From positions 1 through 7,421 of IMG/VR virus record IMGVR_UViG_3300017469_000123: a stretch of DNA of 7,421 nt. One strand, written 5' to 3'. Position numbers and translations under genes: made by a program. Below, in pieces: positions 1 to 7,421 of this stretch (positions within the stretch are counted from its first letter, which is position 1; every line of letters starts with the position of its first letter). Under the pieces are notes generated by a model. The model was not told where the DNA came from. It did not search any database and saw nothing but the letters and a program-made list of their open reading frames with translations.

Positions 1-1724
1 TTTATCTGCTCGAAAAGAGAGTTAGCTTGCATAGCGGAAGACATTGCGTTCTTTAACACCCTAAGAGCTTCAGTATAGTTGTTCATTAAAGCCAAGAAGT
101 ATGCTGATGGTGAACTGGCATTTACCTGTTGAGTTACGAGTGTGTTTACAGTGTTCAAGTAATCTAGTGTTTGTTGGGTCTTCTCAAGCCCTGACAGATA
201 AGTTTGCACCTGGGTTTGGTAGTTTTGTGCAATTTCAAACAGCTGTTTGGCGGAACTTTGCATATCATAGCTCTCGCTCGAACTTAACAACTGCAGAGCT
301 TGCGATATATCGCTTAGAATCGTATCCTTATTCGCTAGAATTGTTTTAATGGAGGACGATGTGTTGTTTTGTGGTGGCGTAAGCAATTGCTGAGCTTCTG
401 CTAACAACTGCATAGCTTGCGATATGTTCTTTGCGTCTTGGATATCACCCTGGACTGACTGCAAATTCATTTGAAGATATTGAGAAGCCCTTTCCAAAAC
501 CTGGTAGTTCTGCTGAAGAACCTGATACACGCTGTTGAAGTATTGAGAAAGAGAAAGGAATGTTTGTGTTGAAGGTGGTCTGGGTAATTGCTGTAAGCCC
601 TCCAAAATCGTAAAACCTTGAATATATGAAGTTAAATTTATGTTAATATCGTTCTGTTGTGCTATTTGCGAAGCTTGTTGTAGATATTGAACAGCCTCAG
701 AATAATTTCCACTTTGTGCTTCTTGTTGTCCTTTTTGTATATCTTCAAGTGTTTGCAGGTAAGCAGTGTATTTAGTATACATTCCCTGGACAGTTTCGGA
801 TAACGAACTTGCCAAACTTGATAACGGTGTATTGTCAGCGTTAACATTCTGCAATTGAATCTGTGCCTGTTTTATAAGGTTTATTGCACTCTGTATTGCA
901 GACGTTGAATTTCTATTCTGTTGTGCAATATTCTGTGCATTAACTAGCAGAGTGACTACACTCAGAAGCTGAGAGCTGACCTGTTCAGACTGTTGGTAAT
1001 CGTTTGCAAGAGATGAAAAACCATTGTAATAACCTGATGCTTCTGTAGCGTACTGTGATGCAGTGGCGAAGAACGATTTTAATGTTTGCAGGTATTGTTG
1101 TAACTCCTGTAATGTTATTTCTCCCTGTGGTGGTTGTGGGAACGCAGGTATCTTAGCTAAGTAAGAAACAGCTGTTGTTACGTCTTCAAGCCTCTTGTCG
1201 CTGATGTTATTTTGTTGTGCTAATTGCAGGGCTTGCTGAAGATACTGATAAGCTTCTGCGAAGTTTGCTTTTTCCAGTTCACTGTTAGCATTATTAATGT
1301 ATTGTCCTATCTGTTGTAGTGCCTGCACTGTCTGTATTTGTTGCTGTATTTGCGTTACGTTGATTACATTCGGGTATTGTTGGGCTATTTGTAGAGCTTG
1401 CTGAAGGTTACTCAAAGCAGTGTTGTAATCATCGTTCTTCAATGCCTCGTTTGCAGAATTGAAAAGCTGAATAACATTGATGTAAGCGAAATAAGGCTGT
1501 AAGTTAATGTTCGGGCTTAGCTTTTGTGCATTCTGCAAATCGGTTAATGCCTGGTTGACGTTACCGTTCTCTGCGTCATTAATTGCTTGTTGGACATATA
1601 TTAACGCTTGGATTTTTTGTGCAGTTTGAGTTAAACCGTTTTGTTCTGCTAATTGCAGGGCTTGTTGGTATTTGTCCTCAGAGAGTAACTGGTTTATCTG
1701 TTGTGTGATAGGATTAGCACTCAT
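1..1724 (-). CDS. Giant Gln-rich TPR-like alpha-helical repeat protein, probable virion/tail protein (3' end outside window)
   Basis: Manual translation from ATG at 1724 gives 574 codons with no stop to the window edge: MSANPITQQINQLLSEDKYQQALQLAEQNGLTQ...NFAEAYQYLQQALQLAQQNN...GNYSEAVQYLQQASQIAQQND...NAMSSAMQANSLFEQI. In-frame TGA upstream at 1737-1739; TATA box 24 bp upstream. Very large helical virion proteins are typical of bicaudaviruses (family knowledge); function is inferred. Confidence 0.9.
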   Translation of the reverse strand, partial: MSANPITQQINQLLSEDKYQQALQLAEQNGLTQTAQKIQALIYVQQAINDAENGNVNQALTDLQNAQKLSPNINLQPYFAYINVIQLFNSANEALKNDDYNTALSNLQQALQIAQQYPNVINVTQIQQQIQTVQALQQIGQYINNANSELEKANFAEAYQYLQQALQLAQQNNISDKRLEDVTTAVSYLAKIPAFPQPPQGEITLQELQQYLQTLKSFFATASQYATEASGYYNGFSSLANDYQQSEQVSSQLLSVVTLLVNAQNIAQQNRNSTSAIQSAINLIKQAQIQLQNVNADNTPLSSLASSLSETVQGMYTKYTAYLQTLEDIQKGQQEAQSGNYSEAVQYLQQASQIAQQNDININLTSYIQGFTILEGLQQLPRPPSTQTFLSLSQYFNSVYQVLQQNYQVLERASQYLQMNLQSVQGDIQDAKNISQAMQLLAEAQQLLTPPQNNTSSSIKTILANKDTILSDISQALQLLSSSESYDMQSSAKQLFEIAQNYQTQVQTYLSGLEKTQQTLDYLNTVNTLVTQQVNASSPSAYFLALMNNYTEALRVLKNAMSSAMQANSLFEQI

Positions 1725-1738
1725 TATATATAACTCTC

Positions 1739-1755
1739 AAACAGCTGTTTAAAAA
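1739..1755 (-). promoter_or_regulatory. Archaeal TATA box (TTTTTAAA, 1755-1748) overlapping palindrome AAACAGCTGTTT (1739-1750); probably a leaderless transcript
   Basis: Minus strand reads AATAACTTTTTAAACAGCTGTTTGAGAGTTATATATAATG. TATA-to-ATG spacing of ~24 nt fits Sulfolobales leaderless mRNAs. Confidence 0.75.
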
Positions 1756-1785
1756 GTTATTAGATTCTCGTCTCCTCCCACTCTG

Positions 1786-2112
1786 CTATCTTTCACGTAA
1801 AAACCAGTAGATAAACGCCAGACCAATGAGCATCGCGAACACTGTAATATCAAAAAACGGGTATGCAATAATGCTGTATAATATTAGCAATACATTGTAT
1901 TGTTGGGAATAATACTGCGGTTGGTTCAGGGTAAATGTAGAATTAGCTATCTGTATCGAATCTTTTGTGCTATTTGTATATATCATTGAAGAGTTAGAGA
2001 TGATGAGAGTCTGTTTACTTATAAGGTTAAAGAACGGGAAAGCTACGAATACTAACATTGTAGCTAACGCAAAAAATACTACTGCTGTAGTTATGGACGG
2101 TTTCAATTGCAT
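1786..2112 (-). CDS. Small 2-TM membrane protein (108 aa), candidate minor virion glycoprotein
   Basis: N- and C-terminal hydrophobic segments flank an S/T/N/Q-rich loop with three N-x-S/T sequons (NSS, NST, NST). SD-like GGTGAT lies just upstream of the ATG (GGTGATTAATCATG). Confidence 0.85.
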   Translation of the reverse strand: MQLKPSITTAVVFFALATMLVFVAFPFFNLISKQTLIISNSSMIYTNSTKDSIQIANSTFTLNQPQYYSQQYNVLLILYSIIAYPFFDITVFAMLIGLAFIYWFLRER

Positions 2113-2114
2113 GA

Positions 2115-2369
2115 TTAATCACCTTCTTCCCTTATTGATGATGCTATAATAAAAATGATAGCTACAACTATGCCTATTCCAAGCCCATACATCCAGTAGT
2201 TTATGTACGGGACAAAACTTGTGTAAGCAGTATGTATATCTGCGGAGACTACATGTGAAATATTGTTCGTAGGCTGAACAGTTTTAGACACTTGAGACTG
2301 TGCAACATTAAAATTATTGAAAATATACACAAGAAGACCGAAAACTATAATGAATATTATCGTAAACAT
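2115..2369 (-). CDS. Small 2-TM membrane protein (84 aa as called; ~105 aa if initiated at ATG 2431 with a -1 shift)
   Basis: Two hydrophobic helices with a loop carrying an N-I-S sequon. The frame stays open upstream to 2435 (GFFSDLATALRSSISFIVIA-M), but the SD-equipped ATG at 2431 is one base out of frame. Confidence 0.8.
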   Translation of the reverse strand: MFTIIFIIVFGLLVYIFNNFNVAQSQVSKTVQPTNNISHVVSADIHTAYTSFVPYINYWMYGLGIGIVVAIIFIIASSIREEGD

Positions 2370-2431
2370 GGCTATAACTATGAACGAAATAGATGAACGT
2401 AACGCTGTTGCTAGATCAGAAAAAAACCCAT

Positions 2432-2797
2432 TTAATCACCCATGTTCAAAAGTTGAGATTCTTCAAAGCCATTCGCCCACTCTTCTAACGTTTGCAATAG
2501 CCCGCGTTTTTTAGCTTCCTTAAGTATTTCTTTCCTAACGGAGTGTGGCACGGGTTCGCCGTCCGGTATACCGTTTTCTTTTATTTTATCTTTGATTAGA
2601 AGGACTAGGTCATGTAACGCTTTCTTTAGGGGTGGGAAGGCGTCAGACCACGCCTCGTCCCCTGCGATTTTTAGCGTTACTTCTGGGTAATTTATTTCAC
2701 CTTTTTCGAATAATAGAAAGTCATGTAGTGCGTCCCTGGCATACTTCTCTGGATGTAAGTCGTCGAACTCAGATTTAACCCAATTTGACCAGTTCAT
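2432..2797 (-). CDS. ATV p131-like four-helix-bundle virion protein (bicaudavirus 'coat'/nucleocapsid family), 121 aa
   Basis: Motif FEKGEINYPEVTLKIAGDEA closely matches the ATV p131 segment as I recall it (FENGQLGYPEVTLKLAGEEA). ATG 2797 is preferred over TTG 2809, which overlaps the operator and lies at or upstream of the expected TSS. Confidence 0.8.
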   Translation of the reverse strand: MNWSNWVKSEFDDLHPEKYARDALHDFLLFEKGEINYPEVTLKIAGDEAWSDAFPPLKKALHDLVLLIKDKIKENGIPDGEPVPHSVRKEILKEAKKRGLLQTLEEWANGFEESQLLNMGD

Positions 2798-2808
2798 TTT
2801 TCCACACA

Positions 2809-2837
2809 AAACATATGTTTGAGTTGTGGTTAAAAAA
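2809..2837 (-). promoter_or_regulatory. TATA box (TTTTTTAA, 2837-2830) followed by palindrome AAACATATGTTT (2809-2820)
   Basis: Read directly; the palindrome lies between TATA and start codon. Confidence 0.75.
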
Positions 2838-2840
2838 TAT

Positions 2841-5096
2841 TTAGATCTTGAAGCCCTGCTTTACCATTTCAAGTATCTTCTTAGCTTTTTCCTCTTCGCC
2901 CTGCGTTAATTTACTAATATTTTGGTTCATCAGCTGTTCTTTCTTTAATTCAGACAGATAGTTGTAATAGTTAACAAGAGCGAACAGTGTACCGAATAGA
3001 TTGATTAATTGTATTCTGTACTTTGGATTCCTTCCAGTTTCCTTTGCAACATTATCTATGAACTTGTCCTTAAGTGTCTCGGGGAACGCTGATAACTCTT
3101 GCCTCGCCTTGTACAAGCAGATTTCATCCTCTTCCGAGCATATCCCTAGTAGTTTAACTATAGTTTTGAACACCTGCATGTCGAGGGTTGAGGGGCTTAT
3201 AGTAGTTTTAACAATTAACGCACCGTACTGATCGTCAAAAGCTTTCTTTGCAAAATTCAAAAGTGATTTTAATTCCTGCAATTGCCCTTCATTTGCTTGG
3301 TTGAGGTCGAAGTCATTTATCCTTAGTATAGCATACTTGCGGTCTGGCGATAACCCATTAACCGACCCGACCAACAACGTGTTATTTTTATCTACAAACA
3401 AGGGTAACGAGAGACCTGCAGACCGTAGCTCTGTAAAAGCGTCAACAAGGTCTTGAAGGTATTTAAGCTTCTGAGGGTCGGCATTCTTAAGGTTCTGTAT
3501 ACTTTCGATCATGCCGTAACTCTTATTCTCGAACAAATTTGTGAATGAGAAGATCAAATAGGCATCCTTGTATAATTGCACCATGGCACTCAGTTCTTTT
3601 TGATACCTCTCGAACTCGTCTGGGCTTAACGGTCTGATGACTCTTAAGTCTAACACTTGATCGGGAGCGAAAGAGTCTAACAGCTGTATAAGATAATTTT
3701 GTCTAAGTTCTGCGAATACATTAGATAAAACGCTCCTGGTAGTCTCTTCTACAACGCTTCCCTGCTTGTACGTAACTTTCTTGCTTGAAGATTTGTATTC
3801 AGATGGGAATTTGGTGACTAACGCCAAGACGGTAGTAGGGAGAACGCTGGCGTTGTTAGTCTCTAACAGTTCTAGTATCCTGTTCCAATTCTTTTGTAAC
3901 TCGTTCCAGACCTTTTCAGCAAACTCTTCACGCTCTTTTCTGCTTAAAGATTCCCCTTGCCTTATGCCGTATCTGTTTAAGTATGGTCTTAGCCAATCTG
4001 GAATGTATAGTGAAAGTTCCATATTGAGCACTTTTTCTAATTCTAATTTATTTTGCTCAATATTACTATTTTCTACCGCATTCTGTTGTTCCTGAGCTTG
4101 AGGAGCGGGGGTCTGTTGAGGAGTACCTTGCTGTTGAGGGGTAGCTTGAGGAGTGGGAACCTGTTGAGGTTGAGGATTACCGAAAACTATTACATCATTT
4201 TTTTCGAGATTGATTACACGTTCGTTTCCTGTGAGATATTGCGAATAGTTTCCTTTCGGTAAAAGTACCGCAGGAGAAGATCCATATGTGCCTATAACCG
4301 CTTCTGCAATAAGATCAATCGGTAACTTTTCAAGGAATTTTTGTAACTCAGGACTCTCAACATTTTCACTAGGTATAAATTCTGCTGGTGGTATGGTAAC
4401 GTTGCCATGATTTTGTTGGTACTGAGATAGCAGGAAATCGGAAATTTCATTTACAATCCCCTTGGGGATGAGTATAATGTGCGGGTATAAGTCCTTCCTG
4501 AAGGAAGTGTGAATCGCATATGCGGTATAGAAATTTTCTCGGAGTGCAGGATTAACGGATTCTAATGTTTGAATTAACGTCTTTACTTTTGCCTCAGCTG
4601 ATTTCGTTTCTTCTTCTGATTTGCTGTTACCAAATGGAACTTTTGGATATAGGTGGATCACATCAAAAACAAAACCTTTACTTGTAACACCTTCTATTAC
4701 ATTAACATTCATAGTCTTCTCATAAAGCGAAAAACCATATGCATCGATTACCTTGCTGACATTACCTAAATTGAGGTGTATAGTCTTTTCTTTATTCTCT
4801 TCGCCATATTTCACTTCTATGTCATCTGGGTTCTTGATGGGATTTCTCCCTTCCGGAGTACTTACTTTAAGTATAAATGGCATATATCCTTGCGAGTTCA
4901 CAAAACTAAATGTTGCCATAGGCTGATAGTTAACTAATGTTAATGATCCGTCAAACTTCTTTGACGCTTCTTTGCCAAATGCAAAATCTCTACTAGATGC
5001 CAAGAACTTAGAAAAAACCTTGACGAGATAGTCATCTAACGGAACGAGCGAAGGTGAAGCATTCGAAGCTGAAGCCAAAGCATTGTTACTACTCAT
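2841..5096 (-). CDS. Hypothetical 751-aa two-domain viral protein (alpha/beta N-half, P/Q/T linker, helical C-half)
   Basis: Long ORF with its own TATA box and SD-like GAGTGATG (5110-5103). No Walker A, MIDAS or nuclease motif recognised. Confidence 0.9.
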   Translation of the reverse strand: MSSNNALASASNASPSLVPLDDYLVKVFSKFLASSRDFAFGKEASKKFDGSLTLVNYQPMATFSFVNSQGYMPFILKVSTPEGRNPIKNPDDIEVKYGEENKEKTIHLNLGNVSKVIDAYGFSLYEKTMNVNVIEGVTSKGFVFDVIHLYPKVPFGNSKSEEETKSAEAKVKTLIQTLESVNPALRENFYTAYAIHTSFRKDLYPHIILIPKGIVNEISDFLLSQYQQNHGNVTIPPAEFIPSENVESPELQKFLEKLPIDLIAEAVIGTYGSSPAVLLPKGNYSQYLTGNERVINLEKNDVIVFGNPQPQQVPTPQATPQQQGTPQQTPAPQAQEQQNAVENSNIEQNKLELEKVLNMELSLYIPDWLRPYLNRYGIRQGESLSRKEREEFAEKVWNELQKNWNRILELLETNNASVLPTTVLALVTKFPSEYKSSSKKVTYKQGSVVEETTRSVLSNVFAELRQNYLIQLLDSFAPDQVLDLRVIRPLSPDEFERYQKELSAMVQLYKDAYLIFSFTNLFENKSYGMIESIQNLKNADPQKLKYLQDLVDAFTELRSAGLSLPLFVDKNNTLLVGSVNGLSPDRKYAILRINDFDLNQANEGQLQELKSLLNFAKKAFDDQYGALIVKTTISPSTLDMQVFKTIVKLLGICSEEDEICLYKARQELSAFPETLKDKFIDNVAKETGRNPKYRIQLINLFGTLFALVNYYNYLSELKKEQLMNQNISKLTQGEEEKAKKILEMVKQGFKI
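4083..4175. repeat. Low-complexity degenerate repeats encoding PQPQQVPTPQATPQQQGTPQQTPAPQAQEQQ
   Basis: ctgttgagg at 4113, 4131 and 4161; 27-nt direct repeat 4095-4121 vs 4143-4169 (23/27 identical). Confidence 0.8.
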
Positions 5097-5109
5097 TTTT
5101 TACATCACT

Positions 5110-5146
5110 CAAACATATGTTTGCTTGTAGTTATTAAAAACTTTTC
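5110..5146 (-). promoter_or_regulatory. BRE-like GAAAAG + TATA (TTTTTAATAA, 5140-5131) followed by 14-bp palindrome CAAACATATGTTTG (5110-5123)
   Basis: Read directly upstream of the 751-aa ORF. Confidence 0.8.
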
Positions 5147-5149
5147 TTG

Positions 5150-5200
5150 GTGACCTCCCTCCCCGCTCTGAAGGGCGAGGTTTGCCGTTCGCTTTGTCGG
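5150..5200 (-). mobile_element. Minimal IS200/IS605-derived non-autonomous element (PATE-like, fused left/right end, single hairpin)
   Basis: Minus strand: TTTAA|CCGACAAAGCGAACGGCAAACCTCGCCCTTCAGAGCGGGGAGGGAGGTCAC. It is a GC-rich island with the CCTCGCCCTTCAGrGCGGGGAGG hairpin typical of Sulfolobales IS605 ends, a TTTAA target on the 5' side, a TCAC-type 3' end and no target duplication. The end sequences are compared from memory. Confidence 0.7.
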
Positions 5201-6037
5201 TTAAATTATGTGGAGACCGAATATTACTGCTAACAACATCATCCCCACTATACCGAGCACGAAGTATAACATTATCCTGTTCATTGATTGCACACGCTTA
5301 CTCTCATTCTGCAACTTCAATAACTTCACTAAATTTGCATTCATCTCCTTAACCGTCGTGGGTATCGTGCTTAATATCTCCAACTCTTGCGATAGTCGAC
5401 GGTTAAGCAACAATTTAGGGTCAACAGCGATAGAAAGTTTTGTGGAAGGAGAGAGCGTTATAGCACCGGTAATCATCTTTTTGACCTTAGCCAACTGTGC
5501 TAGTAAGTCTGGTTCCGCTGTATCATACTCAGACACAGGTATCGATGTTTCTAACGTCTCTAATCTTATCGCATATGGCATTGTGTTGTTTTTCCTTATT
5601 GTGATCAACAACGGTCTATGCATCTTCCCGTATTGTATCATCCCGACCATGGATTCCGAGGTGACCGGGACAATTAGCTCTTCGCCTGTAACTGGGTCAT
5701 GGACTGTGTACAACGACGGCGATAATTTTTCGCCTACGTATAGTTGAGCAGACCTAGTAGATATATCAACGTTGACAACTACAACGTCACTATTCTTAGA
5801 GCGACGGATTTGCCTTATTAGCCCATTTCTTATGGGGTCTTTCATATACGACCTTCTGAACGTTACGTATACAACAATAAATACTACAAATAGTATACCT
5901 AGAGCGATAAAAATGTAAACATATGGCGGAGATAATAGCATTCGAAATAACGAGAAAACTGTAACTTGTTGAGCTTGTGTGTGTGGGGCTACAGTGTTTG
6001 TCAAACTTATGTTTGAAGACGGTGTTTTCAGTGCCAT
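5201..6037 (-). CDS. Membrane protein with N- and C-terminal TM helices and a pre-C-terminal coiled coil (278 aa)
   Basis: TM1 YVYIFIALGILFVVFIVVYVTF; TM2 IMLYFVLGIVGMMLLAVIFGL. Start moved from GTG 6097 to ATG 6037 because TTTTAAAA (6066-6059) lies ~22 nt upstream of it. Confidence 0.85.
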   Translation of the reverse strand: MALKTPSSNISLTNTVAPHTQAQQVTVFSLFRMLLSPPYVYIFIALGILFVVFIVVYVTFRRSYMKDPIRNGLIRQIRRSKNSDVVVVNVDISTRSAQLYVGEKLSPSLYTVHDPVTGEELIVPVTSESMVGMIQYGKMHRPLLITIRKNNTMPYAIRLETLETSIPVSEYDTAEPDLLAQLAKVKKMITGAITLSPSTKLSIAVDPKLLLNRRLSQELEILSTIPTTVKEMNANLVKLLKLQNESKRVQSMNRIMLYFVLGIVGMMLLAVIFGLHII

Positions 6038-6087
6038 GTTAATATCTTGGCAGAAGGGTTTTAAAAGAAGAAGGAAGCGAAGTCGCG

Positions 6088-6094
6088 AAAAAAA
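6088..6094 (-). terminator. Putative oligo-U terminator of the capsid gene
   Basis: T7 tract ~20 nt after the capsid stop, followed by a pyrimidine-rich stretch; typical of Sulfolobales terminators. Confidence 0.5.
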
Positions 6095-6114
6095 CACGTG
6101 CTTGACTTAGAGTT

Positions 6115-6588
6115 TTAACCAGTCTTGAATTTCTCCATTATTATGGATATTATACCTGCCGCGATGAGTACTATCCCTGTCACACCTAACAGCACGTACA
6201 GCGTCGGGAAGAAGCTGAAGAACGATACCATACCGTTTACGAGTGGGTGGGTCAAGTTATATGCCAACGTTCCTGGTGACGGATTGCTTATTGCTGAGGC
6301 AGTAGCTGTGGCGAAGATAGACAGAATGAGACCAGATAGTCCTATTATTACACCGACGATTAGGAGGGCTATTGCTATCGTCGGGATATCAAACCCATTG
6401 GTTCCGAACGTTACTCTGACTAATGACCCTGCTACTCCTGGTTCATGAATTCTAGTCGCTTTCTTTATTTTTGGTATATGAACACTATTTGCCTTTGGTG
6501 TACGAACGTTAATTACCTTGAACATTTTTGCTTTTTTACCACCTGCTCCTACTGATTTCACTGACGGAACGACTACCGAAACCGACAT
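6115..6588 (-). CDS. Major capsid protein of spindle-shaped virus type (hydrophobic two-helix hairpin, SMV1-like), 157 aa
   Basis: Basic N-terminal extension (11 K/R and 1 E in the first 50 aa), then two long hydrophobic helices (IPTIAIALLIVGVIIGLSGLILSIFA; FFPTLYVLLGVTGIVLIAAGIISII) joined by a loop with an N-L-T sequon. This matches the established architecture of bicaudavirus/fusellovirus MCPs. Confidence 0.8.
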   Translation of the reverse strand: MSVSVVVPSVKSVGAGGKKAKMFKVINVRTPKANSVHIPKIKKATRIHEPGVAGSLVRVTFGTNGFDIPTIAIALLIVGVIIGLSGLILSIFATATASAISNPSPGTLAYNLTHPLVNGMVSFFSFFPTLYVLLGVTGIVLIAAGIISIIMEKFKTG

Positions 6589-6601
6589 TTTGCTTCGTGT
6601 A

Positions 6602-6633
6602 AAACATCTGTTTGAGGTATTAATAAACTTTTC
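6602..6633 (-). promoter_or_regulatory. BRE-like GAAAAG + TATA (TTTATTAATA, 6627-6618) followed by palindrome AAACAGATGTTT (6602-6613)
   Basis: Read directly upstream of the capsid gene. Confidence 0.8.
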
Positions 6634-6754
6634 GCTTCACTATTTCTGGTCTGGGAAAAGGTCTCAGCTCCACAGGCACTGGGGGTGGCTCCCACCCCGA
6701 GCGATATAAAAATTGTATAAAAAATTTGGAATTTGGTATGGGTTTGGGCTTCAT
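6620..6754 (-). CDS. Possible 44-aa Pro-rich microprotein (MKPKPIPNSKFFIQFLYRSGWEPPPVPVELRPFPRPEIVKRKVY)
   Basis: Open from ATG 6754 to TAA 6620; preceded by ATATAAAT (6790-6783) and the operator palindrome. Short enough to be a chance ORF. Confidence 0.3.
   Translation of the reverse strand: MKPKPIPNSKFFIQFLYRSGWEPPPVPVELRPFPRPEIVKRKVY
6654..6703 (-). mobile_element. Relic resembling the 3' tail of a Sulfolobales tnpB / 5' part of the omegaRNA scaffold
   Basis: GC-rich CGCTCGGGGTGGGAGCCACCCCCAGTGCCTGTGGAGCTGAGACCT translates as RSGWEPPPVPVELRP, like recalled TnpB C-termini (GWEPPxVPVELRPLP). It contains a 7-bp hairpin at 6682-6698. Confidence 0.55.
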
Positions 6755-6763
6755 TATTCCGTC

Positions 6764-6804
6764 AAACAGATGTTTAAGAAAGATTTATATTTCCTGATCA
6801 GGAA
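6764..6804. promoter_or_regulatory. Possibly bidirectional TATA (ATTTATAT, 6783-6790) flanked by two different palindromes: AAACAGATGTTT (6764-6775) and TTCCTGATCAGGAA (6791-6804)
   Basis: Read directly; on the + strand a purine-rich BRE-like AAGAAAGA precedes TTTATAT. Confidence 0.7.
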
Positions 6805-6823: not shown

Positions 6824-7421
6824 ATGGAACCAGGAGAAATAGCTGGGATCGTAATAGATAGAGTAGTAGATTATTGCCGAAATAACTCCGGAGACACTAC
6901 ACTTCAATGTATGGAATACCATAGTCCAGACCAGTTAGACGTGTTCATAGACGGATATCTTACAGAGGAAGAGGATAATGAACTTGAAAAAGAGATAGAA
7001 AATTCAGACAGCTTCTGGGATGAGCTAAGAAAGCAGTACGACAAGTTGTGGGGTCAAGAGATTGGTGCAATACTCGGTAATTCCCTAGCCGATACATTGT
7101 CATTGTTATATGAAAATATAATACAAAATGATGAGCTTGATGATGCAAGGAAAGCTAGACGCCTAAAAGCTTATGCCGAGGTATTAGATGGGTTCGGTGA
7201 TGCGATTAAGCGTGCATTACAAGAGAGGAAGCCACTAAGTGAGAGAGATTTGGATTACTGGTACACAAAGTTAGGTGATTCTGCATTCGGAGTCAAAAAC
7301 TATAACTATTACGAGGAAATTGGCTATGATCTTGGCTATTATGATACGTTAGACGACAATGACAAATTAGAGGTATTAAGCATTTTGCTAGATGAGGTAG
7401 GTAATGTGTTGTACGACATAG
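6824..7421 (+). CDS. Highly acidic helical hypothetical protein (3' end outside window)
   Basis: 199 open codons from ATG 6824: MEPGEIAGIVIDRVVDYCRNNSGDTTLQCMEYHSPDQLDVFIDGYLTEEEDNELEKEIENSDSFWDELRKQY...LLDEVGNVLYDI; 47 D/E versus 19 K/R by manual count. Confidence 0.9.
   Translation, partial: MEPGEIAGIVIDRVVDYCRNNSGDTTLQCMEYHSPDQLDVFIDGYLTEEEDNELEKEIENSDSFWDELRKQYDKLWGQEIGAILGNSLADTLSLLYENIIQNDELDDARKARRLKAYAEVLDGFGDAIKRALQERKPLSERDLDYWYTKLGDSAFGVKNYNYYEEIGYDLGYYDTLDDNDKLEVLSILLDEVGNVLYDI

Follow-up and report, generated by a model that had tools for sequence, protein, structure and literature searches.

A short palindrome, AAACAnnTGTTT, recurs through a 7,421-base DNA fragment, IMG/VR contig IMGVR_UViG_3300017469_000123, the entire length of which is the window analyzed here. 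We found that this palindrome is a real, selected, dyad-symmetric element at promoters of archaeal viruses related to Sulfolobus monocaudavirus 1 (SMV1) and that, judging from its sequence, it belongs to a wider family of sites with the 8-bp core ACAGCTGT, common to Acidianus two-tailed virus (ATV), to ATV2, and to Acidianus tailed spindle virus (ATSV). We predict, with a probability that we put at roughly 0.55, that the copies of the palindrome serve, across the whole genome, as operators for a dimeric DNA-binding protein specific to the viral lineage. A reading of the window from its letters alone (the original prediction) had taken the palindrome for the mark of a late-gene regulon; it is right about a selected dyad promoter site and wrong about the scope of the sites and the timing of the genes behind them.

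The window is a fragment of an SMV1-like monocaudavirus (88% identity to SMV1 and SMV1a, 87% to SMV4, and 80% to SMV3), oriented as the reverse complement of the start of an SMV1-like genome. A direct scan returned six exact copies of AAACAnnTGTTT, beginning at positions 237, 1739, 2809, 5111, 6602, and 6764, against a chance expectation of 0.02 copies per window, and none of 200 shuffled sequences contained more than one copy. The scan and the shuffles agree with the number, positions, centers, and chance rate that had been reported for these copies, and with the observation that five of them lie in short intergenic gaps while the copy at 237 is inside a gene (gp09). The core ACAGCTGT is present eight times in the window, with 0.55 copies expected.

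In SMV1-like viruses, the full consensus of the element is cTcAAACAKMTGTTTgAg, and this symmetric extent of about 18 bp would fit binding by a dimer. The arms had been described as invariant and the center as variable; the first part of this description stands, but the center is limited to K followed by M (GC, TA, GA, or TC) in 83 of the 89 copies found in SMV1, SMV3, and SMV4, and the conserved part is three bases wider on each side. These three outer bases of each arm are biased toward c-T-c ... g-A-g, and G is almost never seen at position -1. There are 28 exact copies in SMV1, 31 in SMV3, 30 in SMV4, and 27 in SMV1a, and SMV1 has another 19 copies with one mismatch, where 5 exact and one-mismatch copies together would be expected. 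The element is by far the commonest palindrome of the 5-N2-5 form in SMV1, SMV3, and SMV4, with only 3 to 4 copies for the runner-up. When intergenic copies were compared between SMV1 and SMV3, the arms were 98.8% identical and the flanks 77.7% identical (p about 1e-16), and the same comparison between SMV1 and SMV4 gave 100% and 84.5%, respectively (p about 1e-12); for copies within genes, the arms are 91 to 93% identical and the flanks 80 to 84% identical. Between orthologous sites, the centers differ and the arms are fixed. Conservation at orthologous promoters was thus borne out, with SMV1, SMV3, and SMV4 keeping the motif perfectly there and beyond the background rate. We saw no sign of the avoidance expected of a restriction-modification target, as CAGCTG is enriched 4- to 6-fold in ATV, SMV1, SMV3, and SMV4. 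Literature searches on the motif letters, with the 2006 ATV genome paper outside their scope, returned no archaeal or viral description of the element, in line with the earlier statement that none was known.

The copies are also non-randomly placed. In SMV1, 17 of the 28 exact copies fall in the non-coding 12% of the genome (p 1e-9), a count that uses a corrected start of gp11, which SMV3, SMV4, and SMV1a annotate downstream of the motif. For about 40% of the copies in SMV1, SMV3, and SMV4, the ATG of an open reading frame (ORF) of at least 50 codons is found within 25 nt, and the spacers cluster at 9 to 16 nt. Sites precede the structural genes gp03, gp05, gp06, gp09, gp10, and gp11, but they also precede gp13, gp14, gp16, gp32, gp38, gp51, and the divergent pairs gp24/gp25 and gp45/gp46. 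Each of these three genomes has 28 to 31 copies, which reach every module (the ATPase, membrane-protein, and small-gene regions among them) as well as gene interiors and convergent gaps, so the palindrome is not, contrary to the claim, a structural-module mark. The sites fall into several classes by their position relative to TATA boxes and start codons: the motif is downstream of TATA at gp03, gp05, gp06, gp11, gp13, gp14, and gp51, overlaps TATA at gp09 and gp16, and is immediately upstream of TATA or between divergent TATA boxes at gp10, gp24/gp25, gp45/gp46, and gp04. The uniform placement at or downstream of TATA that had been described is therefore not found, since the motif is downstream, overlapping, or upstream in SMV1-like viruses and in ATV is mostly found directly upstream of TATA or just past a stop codon. 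Copies with a TA center are nearly all in the class downstream of TATA, and about half of those with a GC center are intragenic; in SMV1, 10 of 11 TA-centered and 6 of 12 GC-centered copies are intergenic (Fisher p 0.07). Four intragenic copies are found in SMV1 gp09, and the convergent gp43/gp44 junction of SMV1 carries a 22-bp perfect palindrome.

Two SMV1 annotations touch these sites. The RefSeq starts of gp11 (16772-17233) and gp43 (43683-44096) look too far upstream: the annotated 5' end of gp11 contains a TATA box and the motif, and both genes are annotated with shorter products in SMV3, SMV4, and SMV1a. The C terminus of SMV1 gp43 departs from that of its family, running through the 22-bp palindrome.

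Metagenomic contigs extend this picture. SMV1-like contigs have 13 exact copies per 16 to 18 kb, and SMV2-like contigs have 7 to 13 core copies per 17 to 20 kb, with GC or GA as the only centers. The SMV2 record itself has 3 exact copies, together with degenerate remnants (1 to 3 mismatches) at orthologous promoters where the TATA box and its spacing are kept. We consider this low count an outlier and not a property of the lineage, because the SMV2-like contigs retain so many core copies. The SMV2 record contains many Ns, several of its structural genes look truncated, and its closest metagenomic relatives keep many more copies.

We also found that the core ACAGCTGT is enriched well beyond the SMV-like viruses. 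It is present 44 times in the whole ATV genome (0.9 expected), 33 times in the first 50 kb of ATV (0.84 expected), 38 times in the first 50 kb of ATV2, 22 to 33 times in SMV1, SMV3, and SMV4 (about 0.7 expected), 9 times in ATSV (0.84 expected), and 6 times in SMV2 (0.5 expected), and it is enriched in five metagenomic SMV-like contigs. In contrast, there are no copies in STSV1, STSV2, SIRV2, or SSV1, viruses of the same hosts (0.15 to 1.0 expected), and none in 15.6 kb of host DNA fragments. The bases flanking the core are lineage specific (aAgaACAGCTGTtcTt in ATV and atCACAGCTGTGat in ATSV) and differ by viral lineage, not by host genus. The ATV sites are 98.5% conserved in ATV2, with flanks at 89.4%, and 16 of the 44 ATV sites fall in the non-coding 8% of the genome (p 1e-7). 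Among these 16 sites, 11 are within 11 nt of a stop codon, 3 are in convergent gaps, and at least 5 lie 1 to 12 nt upstream of the TATA box of the next gene. Two cores in ATV gp35, at 16504 and 16517, are 13 nt apart; ATV2 has a mismatch in the first and keeps the second.

Within the window, four of the exact copies overlap or follow a TATA-like box on the minus strand. The copy at 1739..1750 (GC center), which is exact in SMV1, SMV3, and SMV4, is in the gp09 promoter, where its last three bases are shared with the 3' end of the overlapping TATA-like box TTTTTAAA (1748..1755, minus strand) and 14 nt separate the motif end from the ATG. The TATA-to-ATG spacing of gp09 would fit a leaderless transcript from the predicted start site and, if a distance of about 26 nt from TATA to start is assumed, the motif is predicted to cover about -27 to -15. 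In the gp06-gp07-gp08 unit, the promoter has the copy at 2809..2820 (TA center), 9 nt downstream of the TATA-like box TTTTTTAA (2830..2837, minus strand; kept in SMV1, SMV3, SMV4, and SMV2) and 11 nt from the ATG. The gp05 promoter has the copy at 5111..5122 (TA center), 8 nt downstream of the TATA-like box TTTTTAATAA (5131..5140, minus strand) and 14 nt from the ATG, and this copy is followed by a Shine-Dalgarno-like GAGTGATG. The gp03 promoter has the copy at 6602..6613 (TC/GA center), which is exact even in SMV2, 4 nt downstream of the TATA-like box GTTTATTAATA (6618..6628, minus strand) and 13 nt from the ATG. At gp06, gp05, and gp03, the predicted start sites are at or just past the motif, so these transcripts would have short leaders with a Shine-Dalgarno-like GTGA or GGTG.

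The sixth exact copy, at 6764..6775 (GA/TC center), is arranged differently. The original prediction had every intergenic copy overlapping a minus-strand TATA box or following one within about 10 bp, which is correct for the four copies above but not for this one, which is 8 nt upstream of the TATA-like box (6784-6791) of a rightward gene with its ATG at 6824. We assign this copy to the rightward gene because the 44-codon leftward ORF next to it is not conserved in SMV3, whereas the rightward gene of SMV3 still has the motif 8 nt upstream of its TATA box. The sole window promoter that lacks an exact copy is that of gp04, with a TATA-like box, TTTTAAAA (6059..6066, minus strand), about 25 nt from the ATG at 6037 and no motif in between; it is served by a one-mismatch copy, AAACACGTGCTT (6092..6103), past the gp03 stop codon and 25 nt upstream of the gp04 TATA box. 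The orthologues of the 6092 copy are exact in SMV1 (TA center) and SMV4 (CG center), and there is none in SMV3. When this one-mismatch copy is counted with the exact ones, the claim that the palindrome marks nearly every promoter in the window is confirmed. The remaining copies are intragenic: the exact copy at 237..248 (GC center), which encodes K-Q-L-F in the gp09 frame and is exact in SMV1 and SMV2 with one mismatch in SMV3 and SMV4; a one-mismatch copy at 1166..1177, also inside gp09, that keeps the core (at 1168); and a weak copy at 3678..3689, inside gp05, with two arm mismatches and an intact core (at 3680).

Published expression data bear directly on the timing of the genes behind these sites. 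In an RNA-seq time course of SMV1a, gp05, gp06, and gp09 were early genes, and gp03, gp11, gp23, and gp24 were full-time or late genes (PMC12199143). The most highly expressed SMV1a gene at all times from 0.5 h was gp03 (PMC12199143). The proposal that one switch keeps virion genes off is contradicted by this comparison, as the motif-bearing genes are early or full-time and have no common late profile (PMC12199143).

A second promoter class in SMV1, SMV3, and SMV4 is built differently, with an inverted repeat, CTAAC-N2-3-GTTAG, fused to a GCAGAAA factor B recognition element (BRE) and a TTTAAATA box; the SMV2 version of the repeat is TCTGCCT...AGGCAGA. Examples are found in SMV1 at 42013 (minus strand) and in genome L009 at 36734 (minus strand), 46032 (minus strand), and 47993 (plus strand). 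This class matches the regulatory sequence described for early and anti-defense genes of SMV2, SMV3, and SMV4, an inverted repeat proposed to be a repressor site (PMC11065993), is present at 1 to 4 promoters per genome, and never occurs together with AAACAnnTGTTT. We rejected the idea that the palindrome is that published motif, since the inverted repeat is a different one and the promoter sets are disjoint when the SMV2, SMV3, and SMV4 promoters are read directly. As the two sets never overlap, SMV genomes have at least two promoter classes.

Transcription is repressed by archaeal regulators that bind at TATA or downstream of it, and the effect of TrmBL1/Tgr and SurR depends on the position of the site. 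We infer that a dimeric, two-fold symmetric protein binds cTcAAACAKMTGTTTgAg, with the core ACAGCTGT common to ATV, ATV2, and ATSV. At about 30 exact copies per 50 kb, such a protein would have roughly one site per transcription unit, in addition to copies in long genes and at gene ends. The sites of gp09, gp06, gp05, and gp03 are predicted to cover about -27 to -1, either overlapping the TATA box or falling between it and the predicted start, and occupancy at these four promoters would block the TATA-binding protein (TBP) and transcription factor B (TFB) or RNA polymerase and turn the units down. Repression is thus plausible where the motif sits between TATA and the start codon. Sites located at the BRE or upstream of it could let this protein either repress or activate, and the intragenic and convergent-gap copies might serve as boundaries or roadblocks, much like the stoperators of temperate mycobacteriophages.

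Several observations weigh against this operator reading. The positions of the motif relative to start sites are predictions, and its position relative to TATA is heterogeneous across promoters. In ATV, the usual place of the core is a short way upstream of TATA or past a stop codon, and 28 of the 44 copies are intragenic, which is not typical of a simple promoter operator. Only 3 exact copies are in the SMV2 record, although it encodes both candidate binders discussed below, and no candidate binder passed all tests: gp43 failed one test of co-occurrence, and so did gp50. In SMV1a, expression of the virion genes that carry the motif is high from 0.5 h of infection onward (PMC12199143), so any repression would have to be partial or limited to a state outside the sampling of that study.

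Other explanations of the sites account for parts of these data. The original proposal, a single repressor specific to structural (late) promoters that keeps virion genes off in an early or carrier state, draws on the four window sites between TATA and start codon, on the presence of a site ahead of all seven genes for abundant virion proteins (gp03, gp05, gp06, gp09, gp11, and gp24, with gp23 in the gp24 unit), and on the lack of the motif in the early/anti-defense promoter class; SMV1 also has an integrase gene, and the possibility of a dormant state has been raised (PMC12199143). We nevertheless think it quite unlikely, given that non-structural units, gene interiors, and convergent gaps carry sites too, that the genes are early or full-time with the capsid gene on top at every time point (PMC12199143), and that motif-bearing genes fall in at least two different temporal clusters. 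The same expression data, in which motif-bearing genes are the most highly and earliest expressed, suit a positive viral promoter tag, in which a bound factor would recruit or stabilize the transcription machinery, for example, to escape the virion-borne RNA polymerase inhibitory protein (RIP), much as in phage promoter-specificity switches. In ATV and at several SMV promoters, the site is where archaeal activators usually bind, at BRE/TATA or just upstream of it, and every motif-carrying virus has RIP-family genes. Sheppard et al. asked how ATV promoters stay active despite RIP and reported no obvious binding sites in them (PMC5123050). This explanation, which we place ahead of the other rivals while still considering it unlikely, is weakened by the SMV1-like promoter copies, most of which cover about -15 to -1 and would be expected to clash with RNA polymerase, and by STSV1 and STSV2, which have P131/RIP-family genes but no motif; it also leaves the intragenic and convergent-gap copies unexplained.

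Those copies, as well as the copies at gene ends, speak for a mainly non-transcriptional role, whether for a genome-organizing, segregation, or packaging protein or for boundaries that favor modular recombination. The dense and fairly even spacing of about one site per 1.2 to 1.7 kb, the many intragenic copies, the mosaic nature of the genomes, and an IS200/605 copy that abuts a site in SMV1 are all compatible with such a role. We regard it as doubtful, ranking just after the promoter tag, because of the strong promoter-proximal preference and the narrow spacing to start codons; for recombination, the 2-bp center is too short for the crossover region of a tyrosine recombinase, no serine recombinase is common to these genomes, and the homology breakpoint of the window, at 6659, coincides with no site. 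A broader possibility, which we offer as speculation about as improbable as the late repressor, is that the large tailed spindle viruses akin to ATV and SMV have in common a self-marking system of ancestral origin, with a ACAGCTGT core every 1.2 to 1.7 kb read by a virus-encoded factor that sets viral units apart from those of the host, for example, keeping them active or insulated during the global shutdown of RNA polymerase by virion-delivered RIP. In such a system, flank specificity would co-evolve within each viral lineage, and the whole would be an archaeal counterpart of phage promoter-specificity switches. We give very little credence to the idea that the basal machinery itself reads the motif as a core promoter element, in the form of a variant initiator or proximal element, or that the motif is a terminator. 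In one promoter class, the motif does end near the predicted start site, and the TA-centered copies are almost all in that class (p 0.07), but the distance from TATA runs from overlap to 10 nt downstream, and elsewhere the motif is upstream of TATA. In addition, the SMV2 record keeps TATA and spacing while its palindrome has 1 to 3 mismatches, and host-like and other viral promoters lack the motif. As for a terminator, the T-run is just 3 nt, and with a center of 2 nt the palindrome cannot form a stable stem-loop; a search for structured RNA gave no Rfam family match in the window.

For the predicted operator set, the binder is probably virus encoded, since the motif is missing from other viruses that infect the same hosts and the flanks vary with viral lineage and not with host genus; a host factor is possible. 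One candidate is the gp43/ATV ORF98a family, a predicted small winged-helix protein (predicted local distance difference test score of 88 to 94 over residues 1 to 60), for which the top Foldseek matches of the gp43 model were all winged-helix domains, none of them significant (E >= 0.25). The ATV and SMV members are 46 to 60% identical, the gene was found in all the motif-bearing genomes tested, the motif-free ones lack it, and a motif site follows it in ATV, SMV1, SMV3, and SMV4. The co-occurrence test that it failed concerns homologues that are 72 to 77% identical and are found in integrated conjugative elements without palindrome enrichment; these are in S. islandicus and S. acidocaldarius chromosomes, next to TraG/VirB4-like genes. 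The other candidate, gp50, is a tandem ribbon-helix-helix (RHH) protein encoded just upstream of the structural module, with no site at its own promoter. It aligns over both RHH units with ATV gp28 (N terminus) and ATSV gp35, and our search returned no cellular homologues, but it had no match in the first 50 kb of ATV2 and had matches in the motif-free STSV1.

We also applied a phyletic filter for proteins present in SMV1, SMV3, and SMV4 and absent from SMV2, which returned two families, and we rejected both. The gp01/gp02 family has no family match, is acidic, and has a HicB-like look, and gp44 is a Phd-like antitoxin from a family widespread in hosts, rudiviruses, and ATSV, with four host loci that lack the motif. 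The premise of absence from SMV2 is itself weakened, because SMV2-like contigs keep 7 to 13 core copies. The gp01 family is in SMV1, SMV3, and SMV4 and not in the SMV2 record, and in SMV1 (region 62-614) gp02 is a partial duplicate of gp01 that is missing in SMV1a (region 62-358). Genes for RHH proteins like aCcr1 are found in SMV1 to SMV4, ATV, and ATSV, and the palindrome does not match the published 9-bp consensus of the aCcr1-box, A(T/G)G(A)TA(G)A(T/G)TACN. In SMV1, the aCcr1-like gene is unannotated; it lies at 41820-41960 (minus strand), antisense to gp40, is 70% identical to SMV4 gp58 over 43 amino acids, and is driven by the promoter of the early/anti-defense type at about 42013. As annotated, gp40 appears to be a shadow ORF.

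Genes in the window were called by annotation transfer, ORFs, and family matches. Reading leftward (minus strand), they are the N-terminal part of a homologue of SMV1 gp09, a very large virion protein (3..1724, 574 codons, with the A of the ATG at 1724); gp08 (1786-2112) and gp07 (2115-2369), both from annotation transfer and ORFs; the gp06 homologue (2432-2797); the homologue of gp05, an abundant virion protein (2841..5096; ORF, annotation transfer, family match, and PMC12199143); gp04 (5201-6037); and the homologue of gp03, a membrane-type protein (6115..6588; family match) named the major capsid protein in PMC12199143. The rightward gene (6824..7420, plus strand) runs past the window end and is homologous to SMV3 gp02 and ATSV gp81. 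The gp06 product belongs to the ATV ORF145/RIP and P131 family, with ATV RIP as its best match (PDB 7oq4 chain Z, E 3.9e-10) and ATV P131 (3faj) as its second; RefSeq relatives label this gene "major head protein." The window was said to encode no sequence-specific regulator, which is correct, but given the match to RIP, it does encode a likely global transcription factor that is not sequence specific. The N-terminal part of gp09 (650-1670, minus strand) consists of repeated Q/L-rich units of about 55 to 190 codons, in repeat families D1, D2, and D4. The 44-codon ORF next to the 6764 copy (6620-6754, minus strand) is probably not a gene, judging from its lack of conservation in SMV3. A GC-rich element, GGGCGAGG-yTTG-yCGTTC..., is found at about 5160-5200 of the window and in SMV1 near 22430, 27040-27062, 47990, and 48400, recurring directly upstream of several motif-bearing promoters. 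It is also the end of the SMV1 IS200/605 copy, where it abuts the motif copy at 27062, and it may be an insertion sequence end or a remnant like a miniature inverted-repeat transposable element; in the window, it folded no better than shuffled sequences.

Since the palindrome is found at most transcription units of ATV, ATV2, the SMVs, and ATSV, it gives a concrete experimental handle, with short probes for pull-down and sites that can be mutated in the now tractable SMV1a/S. islandicus REY15A system. With it, one can ask whether global control of the stoperator kind is used by archaeal viruses that are chronic or temperate. Two promoter classes, early/anti-defense and palindrome, can also be told apart by it, and annotation benefits, as several SMV1 RefSeq start codons look wrong against the motif.

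Among known systems, SvtR of SIRV1, F55 of SSV1, and AvtR of AFV6 are small virus-encoded RHH-type proteins that act on sites overlapping viral core promoter elements. They act at a handful of promoters, unlike the roughly 30 to 45 copies per genome seen here, and we know of no operator of this type with such a copy number or with intragenic copies. The TrmBL1/Tgr motif (TGM) and the SurR site of Thermococcales are likewise palindromic and present at many promoters, downstream of TATA or upstream of BRE/TATA, so that a single factor can be a repressor at part of them and an activator elsewhere. They serve cellular metabolic regulons, with tens of sites per 2-Mb genome and few intragenic ones, whereas the palindrome occurs about once per 1.5 kb of viral genome and its core is common across a virus family. 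The aCcr1-box is bound by cellular aCcr1 and by the viral RHH homologues ATV gp29 and SMV3 gp63 (PMC9976878). It, too, is a short palindrome between TATA and start codon, and binding by a small RHH protein represses, but its sequence differs, its known targets are host genes such as cdvA, and the viral RHH gene in SMV1 and SMV4 is itself under a promoter of the early/anti-defense class. The early/anti-defense sequence is also a virus-specific, conserved inverted-repeat promoter sequence in the same genomes (PMC11065993). It differs in that its repeat is fused to the GCAGAAA BRE and TATA and is limited to 1 to 4 promoters per genome.

The closest likeness is to the dispersed operators of temperate phages. 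The stoperators of cluster A mycobacteriophages, bound by the L5 gp71 repressor, and the dispersed C1 operators of P1 are sets of about 25 to 35 near-identical short sites through a temperate genome of about 50 kb, and most of these sites are in short intergenic gaps next to gene starts, with some elsewhere. With such dispersed placement, one protein can act on nearly all units and block read-through. The palindrome shares with stoperators the tens of near-identical sites over a whole viral genome, mostly in short intergenic gaps. Stoperators, in contrast, are asymmetric sites whose orientation follows transcription, and a known immunity repressor binds them, while the element described here is a perfect palindrome with a predicted binder, in viruses of an archaeal host with TBP/TFB promoters, and its target genes are strongly expressed in productive infection.

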